This document shows positions 11,797 through 24,477 of a stretch of 64,000 nucleotides of DNA, in pieces (position 1 is the stretch's first letter; every line of letters begins with the position of its first letter). Under the pieces are notes generated by a model. That model made no database searches. It was not told where the DNA came from and was given only the letters and a program-made list of their open reading frames with translations. A program made the translations under genes and the position numbers. The stretch lies in the sequence record LC727701.1; one strand, 5' to 3'.

Positions 11797-20560
<8,764 letters not shown>

Positions 20561-20618
20561 ATACTTGGAATAGTTATTTATTGTAACCATTCTTAAACCA
20601 ATGTAATAGGTAATTAAC

Positions 20619-20924
20619 ATGTCTCTACTTAAAAAGATCGGTCTAGCTTTAATTGGATCAGAAGGACGTAAGGAAGTTTTTGAACAAGAATTAACTAAAC
20701 TATCAAATTCTAATGCAGTTATTGATCAAATGGTGATTAATTTACTGGGTAGTAAGAAGAAGTTAGATGACTTCCTAATTAAAGCTGAAGAAATTGATAA
20801 TAAGAAACTAGGCTTCATTAAAAATCGAGCCGAACTTATTAAACTAGTCAAATCTAAATATTCACAAGACCCTCGGGTTGCCGATGTAGTAGTGTCACTT
20901 TACATTGGTGGTTTCATTTATTGA
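20619..20924 (+). CDS. Hypothetical helical protein (101 aa)
   Basis: AGGT RBS; no terminator separates it from the gp182-like gene. Confidence 0.7.
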   Translation: MSLLKKIGLALIGSEGRKEVFEQELTKLSNSNAVIDQMVINLLGSKKKLDDFLIKAEEIDNKKLGFIKNRAELIKLVKSKYSQDPRVADVVVSLYIGGFIY

Positions 20925-20931
20925 GGTAAGT

Positions 20932-21624
20932 ATGTCTAAACCTAATCTTGAGTGGTTAGCTTCCTTAGAAAGTAAAGAAGCTAAGAGTACAGTAGATTCT
21001 TCCGATATGGATAATGATCAAAAGGAAGGTAGCGATAAGTCTCAACAAGATGAAGCTACTGAACCTGAGAAGAAAATTACTGCAACTGATGTACAAATTG
21101 CAATTGAAGAATATGCGCGTATCCGTGCATTAACCACTACTAAAGATCTTCCAACTGACCCTGAACCAGGTGATACTTATCATGTAAATGGGGTAGATTG
21201 GATTTATCAAGAAGATGGTGGATGGGTAACTATGCAAGGTATTTATGGCCATGAACATTTTGATGAAAATGGTCTAAATATTGAAGCAAGTGGTATTGAT
21301 CAGAAATCAGGTGCAACTAAACGTTATGTGGTAACTGGTTATAATGCTCAGACTAACCCAGCTGCTATGCCTGGTGATAATCTGACTGAATGTGTTATCC
21401 TAATGCAGAATGGACTTGTTCCAGAAGTTGGTGTAAATGGCCTAACTGCTGACTGTCTACTTAAAATCGTTAAAGATTTATTTGAAGGTTATCAAGCAGG
21501 CCCATTTGCATGTGAAGAGAATCAGGTAGTGATTAATTCAATGGACCGTGCTCTTAGTGCAATTCATCAACGCCTCGTAAGACGTAAAGAACAAGGTACT
21601 GAAGGTACCTATAGTGGTAATTGA
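20932..21624 (+). CDS. tad1: Tad1-like anti-Thoeris/anti-CBASS nucleotide-sponge protein with acidic N-terminal extension (gp184-like, 230 aa)
   Basis: GAGGT RBS before ATG 20932; C-terminal MQNGLVPEVGVNGL..LLKIVKD..YQAGPFACEEN..ALSAIHQRLVRRKEQGTEGT matches the recalled Tad1 signature (FQxG..NG..DLLxIVxDRLxxFQAGPFxxREN..AL..R...R...GT). Confidence 0.8.
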   Translation: MSKPNLEWLASLESKEAKSTVDSSDMDNDQKEGSDKSQQDEATEPEKKITATDVQIAIEEYARIRALTTTKDLPTDPEPGDTYHVNGVDWIYQEDGGWVTMQGIYGHEHFDENGLNIEASGIDQKSGATKRYVVTGYNAQTNPAAMPGDNLTECVILMQNGLVPEVGVNGLTADCLLKIVKDLFEGYQAGPFACEENQVVINSMDRALSAIHQRLVRRKEQGTEGTYSGN

Positions 21625-21657
21625 CATAAATGCCTCCCTTCGGGGAGGCTTTATTTC
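21624..21657 (+). terminator. Intrinsic terminator, UUCG-loop family
   Basis: ACATAAATGCCTCCC-TTCG-GGGAGGCTTTATTTC; identical 34 bp at 56729-56762. Confidence 0.85.
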
Positions 21658-21659
21658 GT

Positions 21660-21690
21660 ATTAAAAAAAATTTGAGATTTATATTACTAG
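21660..21690 (+). promoter_or_regulatory. phiKZ-type early (vRNAP) promoter
   Basis: AT-rich tract, TTTGAGAT, then TATATTAC at 21680-21687. Confidence 0.8.
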
Positions 21691-21732
21691 TGTGTAATTA
21701 GGAAACCATCTATCTAGTAAAGAGGAATCACA

Positions 21733-22287
21733 ATGAGCGTTGTAATTTTCACTGCCAGACCTATTGGTTATAAAGTTCCTGGCGCTAATTCCACTGTAAA
21801 TAAGTTTGCACTAAATACAGCTAATGCACCTAGTGTATATAGTTCTTCACCAGGATCACCAATTACTGCTCAGGAGAGTAGTTGTATCTATACACTCACT
21901 TCAAATCATGAGTTAATCGCTGGGGACACCGATAAAGATAACTCCCTAATGAGTTTCAAACTAGTGCTTGCGTATAATAACGATACAGCTAATTATCTAA
22001 TTAGTACGCAGGTTATTGATAGTATCGATAAACTAAAAGGAGTGGAAATTATTAGTGAACTCAGTTTCAGTGTAATTGATACTGGTGCACATATGATCCG
22101 TAGAGTGAATTCGATCGGTGTATGTGAGGCTGTCGCCGCTCGATGGTCTCCAGTTGCAATTGAACACGTGGCTAAAGCAACCGAGCGTGAGCACCCTGGT
22201 ACTCCCATCGGTGATGCTCGTGAGATGATCGACTCTGGTGAAGACCTGGGTGACGTATGTACTTCATATATCAAATCGAGTAACTAG
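21733..22287 (+). CDS. Hypothetical early protein (184 aa)
   Basis: AGAGGA RBS; first gene after early promoter. Confidence 0.75.
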   Translation: MSVVIFTARPIGYKVPGANSTVNKFALNTANAPSVYSSSPGSPITAQESSCIYTLTSNHELIAGDTDKDNSLMSFKLVLAYNNDTANYLISTQVIDSIDKLKGVEIISELSFSVIDTGAHMIRRVNSIGVCEAVAARWSPVAIEHVAKATEREHPGTPIGDAREMIDSGEDLGDVCTSYIKSSN

Positions 22288-22288
22288 C

Positions 22289-22531
22289 ATGGTAGATAAA
22301 GACAAAACAATGGTAGATTTGATTAAGTCAGCGCAAGAACTGACTTCACATCTTGGCCCACTGAATAAAGTATTAACTACCATTAATCTAATTGGTATGC
22401 CAGATGCTTTAAAAGAAGTAGTTAAACTCCCCGATGTAAAATGTGTTGTATATAAACGACCATTAACTGATAATCTAATTAAGGTTGTCTTTAATGATGG
22501 TAGTTGCTTTGTGATAAAAGATGTAAATTAA
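22289..22531 (+). CDS. Hypothetical protein (~80 aa)
   Basis: ATG at 22289 directly after the upstream stop, preferred to the track start at 22238. Confidence 0.6.
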   Translation: MVDKDKTMVDLIKSAQELTSHLGPLNKVLTTINLIGMPDALKEVVKLPDVKCVVYKRPLTDNLIKVVFNDGSCFVIKDVN

Positions 22532-22561
22532 ACCACCACCGTAAATAGAGAGAGTACTAAA

Positions 22562-22966
22562 ATGTCCATCGAAACCACCAAGAAGTTTATCGAAACCCAC
22601 AACCTAAATGAAAAAGTAAGCATGTCTGATGCCGGGGTATTTGAGATCCCTGACGGTCTATTTGAAGAAGTTGTTCTTCAACCAGCAGGCGTTACTGCCG
22701 AGCAGTATGCGCAGGTACATGAAGGTGCAGGTCAACTAGCAGCGGCTGTAAGTTATGTATTTGCTGAAAAAGCCGCACCGTACATGAAAGAAAATGAAAG
22801 CATTGCTGAGCTTGGTTATTCTTATAATGCAGGCGGTGCAACTGTTTCTGGTATCATTGATCGCAGTGGTGCTCTTGTAACAGTTGTAGATACCAAATAT
22901 AAGAGTAGCGCTATGACTGACGTTGTTGAAAGTGTAGCCAGCTTCTTTGAAGATGTCAATAGCTAA
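22562..22966 (+). CDS. Hypothetical protein (134 aa)
   Basis: GAGAG RBS; codon usage rich in GGT/GCT/C-ending codons suggests high expression. Confidence 0.8.
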   Translation: MSIETTKKFIETHNLNEKVSMSDAGVFEIPDGLFEEVVLQPAGVTAEQYAQVHEGAGQLAAAVSYVFAEKAAPYMKENESIAELGYSYNAGGATVSGIIDRSGALVTVVDTKYKSSAMTDVVESVASFFEDVNS

Positions 22967-22993
22967 TATATACTAGCTATTTCAATATAATAA

Positions 22994-23027
22994 GATCAGT
23001 GGGTGCATTGCCCACTGGTCATTTTTT
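22994..23027 (+). terminator. Intrinsic terminator
   Basis: GATCAGTGGG..CCCACTGGTC followed by ATTTTTT. Confidence 0.8.
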
Positions 23028-23086
23028 ATATTAAAAAAGTTTAATGGCTAAATAGTACATTTTAATAATTTAAGGAACTGAGTATT

Positions 23087-23416
23087 ATGGCGGATCAGAA
23101 TTTATTTAAAGAAGTTCATGGTGATAATAAAAAATCACATTCTGACAATATCAAATATAATCTAGTTATTGCAATTGTACAAACTGCCCGTCAAAAAGCC
23201 ATTTCTCAAAAAGTATTGATTGATGATGTTTTCACTAAACTAGGCATCTCTGATGAACTTAGTGAGAATATTAAAATGTTTAATTTACCAGCTTTAAGCA
23301 TTGATGTATTAGTTGATGTTCTATATAGCTTAGGTTATAGAGCTTCATTAGAATTATCGCAACAAGATTTAGAAGATAATGTTGAAGCAGTAATTAAACT
23401 TAAGATGAGGGATTAG
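23087..23416 (+). CDS. Possible XRE-family helix-turn-helix protein
   Basis: AAGGA RBS; C-terminal LSIDVLVDVLYSLGYRASLELS resembles the XRE/HigA-type tail pattern. Confidence 0.45.
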   Translation: MADQNLFKEVHGDNKKSHSDNIKYNLVIAIVQTARQKAISQKVLIDDVFTKLGISDELSENIKMFNLPALSIDVLVDVLYSLGYRASLELSQQDLEDNVEAVIKLKMRD

Positions 23417-23418
23417 TA

Positions 23419-24477
23419 ATGAATGGTTTATTTGTATGTATCGAAGGAACTGAAGGTGTTGGTAAAACAACTGTTACAAAGATGGTTGTTGAGGAACTAC
23501 GTAAGCGCAATTACGATGTAGTAGCAATGCGTGAACCAGGTGGTACAGCTACATCGGAAAAGATTCGACAAATGTTAATTTGGCCAGAATTTAAAGATGA
23601 AGTTCGTCCGCCAGAATTCGATGTATTGATGCATAGTGCAGGTAGGATGCTTAATGTAGAAAACATTATTCGACCTGCTTTAAAAGATGATAAAATCGTT
23701 ATCACTGAACGTTTCATTGCATCTACTTATGCTCTTAATGTAGTACCTTTTGAAGAAACTAATCCATACCTATCAAAACTATTTATGGATATTCTTCAAG
23801 GAACACTACATTCTATTCCAGAACCGGCTACTTTCTTTTTAACTGCTCCTGAAGAAGTTCGTAAAAAACGAATTGAAATGCGCGACCGAGGTCTTGACTA
23901 TTATGAGTCTAAGGGTTCCAGTTACTTTAATAAAGTAGATGAAGGTTATGGACGCTTAATTAATCAACCTAGTTCAATTGTTGTAGATACCAATCGCGAT
24001 CTAGACATCATTGTTAATGAGATTGTTGAATCAATTATTTTCCTGCGTGATAAACAGAAAAATAAACAATCATCATTTGATGAACAACTAGCTAAAACTA
24101 CAACTAGTGATCAGTTTGATGATAGTGTAAGTTCTGAAATACCATGGAATGATGAACAGCAAGAAGATACTGTCGCAACAACCGATGACACTATTAATTT
24201 TGATCTAGATGCTGAAATCAGTAAGTATCTTGATGAAAATATTATCCCTCAGTTATTCGAAGGTGATGATCGTTTCCTTGCATCTGGTAAGGTTGTGGCA
24301 CAGAAGTACTGCCAACGAGTTTACGATCAGCTACCTGATAGTGAAAAGCACAAGATGTTCTTAGGTTCAAATAAAGAACGTCTAAATCAACAAATTCATA
24401 GTTTACTTTACTATGGACATCAATTAGATGCATTCATTGCAGAAAATGATCTAATTGGTAAAACACTCTGGAAATAA
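23419..24477 (+). CDS. tmk: Thymidylate kinase with ~140-aa acidic C-terminal extension
   Basis: IEGTEGVGKTT P-loop, REPGGT, ERFIASTYA; AAA ~210 aa kinase core followed by an extra domain. Confidence 0.9.
   Translation: MNGLFVCIEGTEGVGKTTVTKMVVEELRKRNYDVVAMREPGGTATSEKIRQMLIWPEFKDEVRPPEFDVLMHSAGRMLNVENIIRPALKDDKIVITERFIASTYALNVVPFEETNPYLSKLFMDILQGTLHSIPEPATFFLTAPEEVRKKRIEMRDRGLDYYESKGSSYFNKVDEGYGRLINQPSSIVVDTNRDLDIIVNEIVESIIFLRDKQKNKQSSFDEQLAKTTTSDQFDDSVSSEIPWNDEQQEDTVATTDDTINFDLDAEISKYLDENIIPQLFEGDDRFLASGKVVAQKYCQRVYDQLPDSEKHKMFLGSNKERLNQQIHSLLYYGHQLDAFIAENDLIGKTLWK

Follow-up and report, generated by a model that had tools for sequence, protein, structure and literature searches.

A Tad1-family domain in the C-terminal part of the phiKZ virion protein gp184 and its predicted ligand range

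The closest described relatives of the protein studied here are the Tad1 (Thoeris anti-defence 1) proteins of phage SBSphiJ7, CbTad1 (PDB 7UAV, 7UAW, 8SMD, and 8KBE-8KBH), and CmTad1 (PDB 8KBB-8KBD), the last two of which have solved structures. Mutating F82, N92, R109, and R113 of CbTad1 abolished binding of gcADPR and of 2′,3′-cGAMP, and cyclic trinucleotides are held in a pocket at the trimer-of-dimers interface that involves R90/T97 in CbTad1 and R88/T95 in CmTad1 (bioRxiv 10.1101/2023.11.15.567273). The canonical Tad1 hexamer takes up two trinucleotides, in a manner reminiscent of Acb2 (anti-CBASS 2; bioRxiv 10.1101/2023.11.15.567273), and Acb2 works by the same principle as the one considered here for gp184, namely the sequestering of cyclic nucleotide signals. 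A comparison of a different kind is offered by the injected head proteins of phage phiKZ (for example gp93 and the inner-body set), which like gp184 are partly woven into the capsid's inner face, cleaved by gp175, non-essential, and found in the next host cell (PMC11297242, PMC10449902, bioRxiv 10.1101/2025.11.23.690004). The cargo of gp184 differs from theirs in that it is a predicted small-molecule sponge, having a defined ligand pocket, and not a helix-rich inner-body domain.

Several of these properties of gp184 have been published, and its virion location, cleavage, injection, non-essentiality, and Tad1 name are taken here from the literature. In the capsid structure, gp184 lies on the inner capsid surface as part of the vertex-binding complex, where it fills the space that gp86 and one subunit of the major capsid protein leave between them; it is cut by gp175 and is largely unresolved (PMC11297242). 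Fossati et al., using FLAG-tagged gp184 and western blots of cells in which translation was blocked, validated it as one of the injected proteins (PMC10449902), and Tad1 is the only anti-defence gene that AntiDefenseFinder finds in phiKZ (PMC11724313). Chan et al. refer to "Tad1, gp184", show it to be non-essential, and describe a protein with its N-terminus wedged in the capsid and with a C-terminus that the head protease frees and that is injected (bioRxiv 10.1101/2025.11.23.690004), and a 2026 review states that phiKZ injects Tad1, which blocks CBASS and Thoeris (PMC13282480). Binding of gcADPR and rescue from type I Thoeris by phiKZ Tad1 are stated second-hand in Chan et al. and in PMC13282480, both citing Li et al., Nature 2024; the November 2023 preprint of Li et al. 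(bioRxiv 10.1101/2023.11.15.567273) does not mention phiKZ. That gp184 is a Tad1 is already known and the idea of a virion sponge is already published, and the one point that is possibly new here is the missing cyclic-trinucleotide site. What we computed is the family membership of gp184, its fold, the conservation of its pocket, its domain layout, and the location of its capsid-bound part.

The window, by which we mean the whole 64,000-nucleotide stretch of record LC727701.1 that was analysed, is DNA of Pseudomonas phage phiKZ, and its positions 20600-22300 are 100% identical to NC_004629 and AF399011 at 198137-199837. In the list of open reading frames, that of gp184 opens with a TTG at 20905. 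A start at the ATG at 20932 is preferable because this codon has a GAGG Shine-Dalgarno sequence upstream (20923-20926) and agrees with both the RefSeq CDS PHIKZ184 and the 230-aa PDB chain 8y6v_I; in a search of all PDB chains, the gp184 protein was 100% identical to 8y6v chain I. RefSeq labels the protein "structural protein". Neither Pfam nor PHROGs would name it, since Pfam assigns it no family (the sole match, WASH-7_C, has an E-value of 0.22, which is chance level) and the three PHROGs families into which it falls are each labelled "unknown function". Two terminator-like hairpins, one before gp182 and one 8 bases past the gp184 stop codon, appear from the sequence to bracket gp182-gp183-gp184 as one transcription unit (Table 1). 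Scored on either strand, the hairpin after gp184 (21632-21649) comes out as a terminator, and it is flanked on both sides by T-rich tails. Matches to sigma-70-like promoters near gp184 were no commoner than in shuffled sequence and were ignored. PhiPA3 gp217 and 201phi2-1 gp280 are syntenic orthologues of gp184 in the same neighbourhood; the record of gp280 notes its identification by mass spectrometry, and the 201phi2-1 homologue of gp182 was likewise detected by mass spectrometry according to its record's note.

Table 1. Positions in the window of gp184, its parts, and the flanking hairpins
Feature	Position	Strand	Details
Upstream terminator-like hairpin	18518..18545	+	Before gp182
PHIKZ184 (gp184) CDS	20932..21624	+	Intact ORF, 230 aa plus stop; NC_004629 CDS 198469-199161
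N-terminal 16 residues with W-x-x-[G/S]-L-E motif (candidate segment for head targeting, or candidate propeptide)	20932..20979	+	Putative function
Acidic disordered linker, residues 17-62	20980..21117	+	pLDDT <50; rich in E, S, K, and D; poorly aligned among relatives
Small beta module, residues about 63-103, probable capsid anchor	21118..21240	+	pLDDT 85-91 over residues 63-100; four short strands
G106-H107-E108, where anchor and Tad1 domain meet; candidate cleavage site of the head protease gp175	21247..21255	+	S/A/G-x-E in a low-confidence linker
Tad1 domain, residues 109-230	21256..21621	+	Profile, AlphaFold2, Foldseek, tblastn; four-stranded sheet plus two long helices
Predicted pocket span: Y187, N197, R214, R218 and the non-conserved E195, N202, S209, A210	21490..21585	+	Mapping onto CbTad1
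Intrinsic-terminator-like hairpin	21632..21656	+	8 bases past the gp184 stop; 7-bp stem with 6 G-C pairs, then a T-rich tail

A preliminary description, made from the letters of the window, had read positions 21241-21624 as a Tad1-like cyclic nucleotide sponge domain and had named an HMM search and a Foldseek search as ways of checking this. The peptide that it quoted is real, as these positions are in frame and equal gp184 residues 104-230 plus the stop codon. It overlooked that this peptide makes up no more than the C-terminal domain of a virion protein of 230 aa, and that the identification was already in print. When the single gp184 sequence was compared by phmmer with all PDB chains, six Tad1 sequences were found besides gp184 itself, with E-values of 2e-6 to 4e-6, and tblastn matched gp184 to the founding member of the family, the Tad1 of Bacillus phage SBSphiJ7, with an E-value of 4e-4. 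An exhaustive search of 1.8 billion representative proteins returned 1,910 relatives of gp184 at E ≤0.001. A profile made from 57 relatives matched the solved Tad1 chains at E-values of 3e-25 to 5e-23 over nearly the whole length, spanning residues 9-124 of the 125 of CbTad1, and matched no PDB chain outside Tad1. Judged at the level of sequence, the similarity of gp184 to Tad1 is far beyond chance.

The predicted fold agrees with this. The AlphaFold2 model of residues 104-230 (pLDDT 93) contains four strands and two helices, at domain residues 70-86 and 92-117, and in a Foldseek search of the PDB the best 20 of 264 matches to this model were all CmTad1 or CbTad1 (TM 0.70-0.78, probability 1.00), with the next match at an E-value of 0.036. 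With this result and a best profile E-value of about 3e-25 in hand, both of the proposed checks bear out the reading of a Tad1-like domain, and the sequence, profile, predicted fold, and pocket residues together support placing gp184 residues about 109-230 in the Tad1 family. Acb2 appeared neither among the matches of the sequence searches with gp184 nor among the listed fold matches. The domain has in common with Tad1 an antiparallel sheet with two long helices, a pocket of an aromatic residue, an Asn, and two Arg, the Q-x-G-P-F and E-N motifs, and a C-terminal G-T lid. It differs in sharing only about 25% identity and in forming just the C-terminal domain of a virion protein, encoded among structural genes, whereas the Tad1 homologues of Bacillus and Agrobacterium phages are encoded among replication genes.

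The names attached to Tad1 homologues vary. The label "ABC transporter ATPase", given to PDB 7UAV and to some phage homologues, was rejected as a description of gp184; it is carried by proteins of about 125-135 aa with the Tad1 fold, and no ATPase-like protein was found in the sequence searches or among the listed fold matches for gp184. Stand-alone phage homologues are annotated either in this way or as "putative structural protein". Those of Bacillus phage Bcp1 (L006:1366-1746) and Agrobacterium phage OLIVR5 (L007:1534-1935) lie among replication and recombination genes. Both labels look like annotation transfer; for "putative structural protein" on the Bacillus phage homologues, whose genes stand alone among replication genes, the source is probably phiKZ gp184. 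Among 155 aligned family members (P0003-P0151 set), which reach about 460 aa, 47 have an N-terminal extension of more than 60 residues and 29 have a C-terminal extension of more than 15, so fusion of the Tad1 domain to further modules, themselves uncharacterised, is frequent.

Residues of gp184 were mapped onto CbTad1 through the shared profile, with the numbering checked against the preprint of Li et al. (bioRxiv 10.1101/2023.11.15.567273). The four CbTad1 residues that are needed for binding, F82, N92, R109, and R113, correspond to Y187, N197, R214, and R218 of gp184. In the 155-sequence alignment, which is biased towards gp184's own relatives, the F82 position is aromatic in 149 of 153 sequences, N92 is kept in all 153, R109 in 153 of 154, and R113 in 146 of 150. 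The C-terminal lid is present as well, with G225-T226 aligned to G120-T121 of CbTad1. The motifs that the preliminary description reported as kept are indeed there (QAGPF at 188-192, EN at 196-197, R214, R218, and G225-T226), and the substitutions that it named, KEQ for IER and GTY for GTN, are correct. The two further family motifs that it listed, GAxHxY and FQxG, are present in altered form, as G-A-T-K-R-Y, where His has become Lys130, and M-Q-N-G, where Phe has become Met158.

The N-terminal half of gp184 is organised differently. Its first 16 residues contain S-L-E and S-K-E motifs of the protease type, and the full-length model has a weak helix at residues 7-17. The W-x-x-[G/S]-L-E motif is common to gp184, PhiPA3 gp217 (L002:2273-2839), 201phi2-1 gp280 (L003:2264-2860), and several metagenomic relatives, in which the sequence that follows it is not conserved, and this motif may be a head-targeting or propeptide signal. 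In the full-length model, the beta module is followed by a dip in confidence at residues 101-110 and then by the Tad1 domain at 111-226. In chain I of the phiKZ capsid entry 8y6v only 34 residues of gp184 are modelled, and these fit the full-length model with an rmsd of 1.4 Å at 100% identity, while 8y6v_I is not among the best 50 of 264 Foldseek matches to the model of residues 104-230. We therefore take the capsid-fixed part of gp184 to lie upstream of the sponge domain and to belong most probably to the beta module; it is not the sponge itself.

The beta module is found elsewhere too. It recurs inside PhiPA3 gp096 (L004:3001-3165), a virion protein of the inner-body family, and at the N-terminal end of a metagenomic protein of 881 aa (P0089), with 61% identity over residues 55-112. 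This recurrence suggests that the module of about 40 residues is a portable capsid anchor on different cargoes.

The head protease gp175 reportedly cuts after S/A/G-x-E, and gp184 holds seven such motifs, one of which, G-H-E at 106-108, falls in the linker between the beta module and the Tad1 domain. Because this consensus is matched at that place, we propose Glu108 as a candidate release site of the Tad1 domain. Three close relatives of gp184 (P0004, P0005, and P0006) have G-x-E at the alignment position of G106-E108.

Taken with the published work, these results make it very probable that gp184 is a two-part virion protein, consisting of a capsid anchor and an injected Tad1 sponge that acts against signalling defence. 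The N-terminal beta module would be wedged, close to the vertices, into the inside of the phiKZ capsid, after a gene presumably transcribed with the structural genes late in infection has supplied the protein for building into the prohead. Cleavage by gp175, most plausibly after Glu108, would free the Tad1 domain, which would stay in the head and be injected with the DNA at the next infection. The sponge would then already be present when the host TIR enzymes of Thoeris or the cGAS-like enzymes of CBASS begin to make their signals, and the pocket of Y187, N197, R214, and R218 would bind gcADPR, and probably some cyclic dinucleotides, so that the effector would never be switched on. A nucleus-forming phage shields its DNA, yet small signal molecules still let the host raise the alarm; a sponge that the virion carries and that enters the cell together with the DNA can act ahead of all phage gene expression. 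Our additions to this scheme are modest, namely the location of the 34 capsid-bound residues in the N-terminal half of gp184, the proposal of Glu108 as the release site, and the predicted absence of a trinucleotide site.

One could also suppose that gp184 is essentially capsid cement. Its Tad1-like domain would then play no part in counter-defence and would be either a remnant or something like a scaffold, shed when the head matures. The position of gp184 in the vertex-binding complex between gp86 and the major capsid protein (PMC11297242) would suit such a role, as would the RefSeq label, and in PAO1 the published insertion mutants of gp184 show about the same competitive success as the other control insertions. 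We consider this very improbable, as order in the capsid is limited to 34 residues of the N-terminal module, and gp184 is dispensable, unlike the essential gp28, gp91, and gp119, which are the truly structural proteins of the vertex (bioRxiv 10.1101/2025.11.23.690004). Moreover, the pocket residues are kept in gp184 and are near-invariant in its 155 relatives, which argues for selection on binding, and gp184 has been detected as an injected protein (PMC10449902).

If gp184 does act as a sponge, its ligands need not be those of CbTad1, and several changes bear on this. The cyclic-trinucleotide contacts R90/T97 of CbTad1 are replaced in gp184 by E195/N202, a difference that also sets gp184 apart from Acb2, and the hexamer-interface pair M104/W105 corresponds to S209/A210; another interface is possible. 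The trinucleotide pocket is a trait of the characterised Tad1 members and not of the whole family; the Arg, the Thr/Ser, and the interface Trp are all present in 16 of the 155 aligned sequences, including SBSphiJ7 Tad1, and 108 of the 155 have none of the three. Since the pocket residues are kept and R90/T97 and M104/W105 are replaced, gp184 is predicted to bind gcADPR and perhaps dinucleotides, to bind trinucleotides weakly or not at all, and possibly not to form the canonical hexamer. The preliminary description had supposed that ligand specificity may differ, which was a reasonable guess; the telling changes are those at the R90/T97 and M104/W105 sites and not the KEQ and GTY substitutions on which it drew.

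Four other differences from CbTad1, His29 to Lys130, Phe52 to Met158, Arg57 to Val163, and Leu119 to Glu224, could mean that the pocket has been retuned and that gp184 is a sponge for a non-canonical signal, such as some other messenger, ADPR-derived or a cyclic nucleotide, that Pseudomonas defence systems use. In published surveys, sponge families shift specificity among homologues (bioRxiv 10.1101/2025.08.24.671296), and the dinucleotide spectra of CmTad1 and CbTad1 already differ. At two of these sites, however, it is CbTad1 that is the outlier, as in most of the aligned family the R57 position is taken by Val, Ile, or Leu and the L119 position by Glu, so gp184 there follows the family majority. 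The four residues that are essential for binding gcADPR as well as 2′,3′-cGAMP have all been kept in gp184, and we regard a non-canonical ligand as unlikely.

Returning to a sponge of predicted gcADPR specificity, it is possible, though we would not yet call it probable, that virion-delivered Tad1 proteins of the phiKZ type form a distinct subclass, in which the gcADPR/dinucleotide pocket is kept and the trinucleotide pocket and the canonical hexamer interface are lost. Such proteins would be dimeric, Thoeris-focused sponges delivered pre-made, perhaps active against dinucleotide CBASS as well, and phiKZ would counter cAAA/NucC CBASS in different ways, for instance through Nlp1. When an array of 1,500 phiKZ mutants was screened in published work against type III-C (cAAA/NucC) CBASS, only the nlp1 insertion lost replication; a tad1 insertion, if the array contained one, did not score. 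Furthermore, Δnlp1 phiKZ, which still carries tad1, needed the trinucleotide sponge Acb2 for rescue from cAAA signalling, and we infer that this fits the predicted missing trinucleotide site in gp184.

Chan et al. suggest that the long run of non-essential genes from orf184 onwards may hold further anti-defence genes (bioRxiv 10.1101/2025.11.23.690004). In the region with which this run begins (window positions 18566-24477), gp183, gp185, gp185.1, gp186, and gp187 have no matches other than to PHROG families whose function is unknown. The product of gp188 (23419-24477), annotated as a thymidylate kinase, is 352 aa long, far more than the roughly 210 aa that are usual for such enzymes, and its extra C-terminal 140 or so residues, which have no assigned function, start with an acidic low-complexity stretch.
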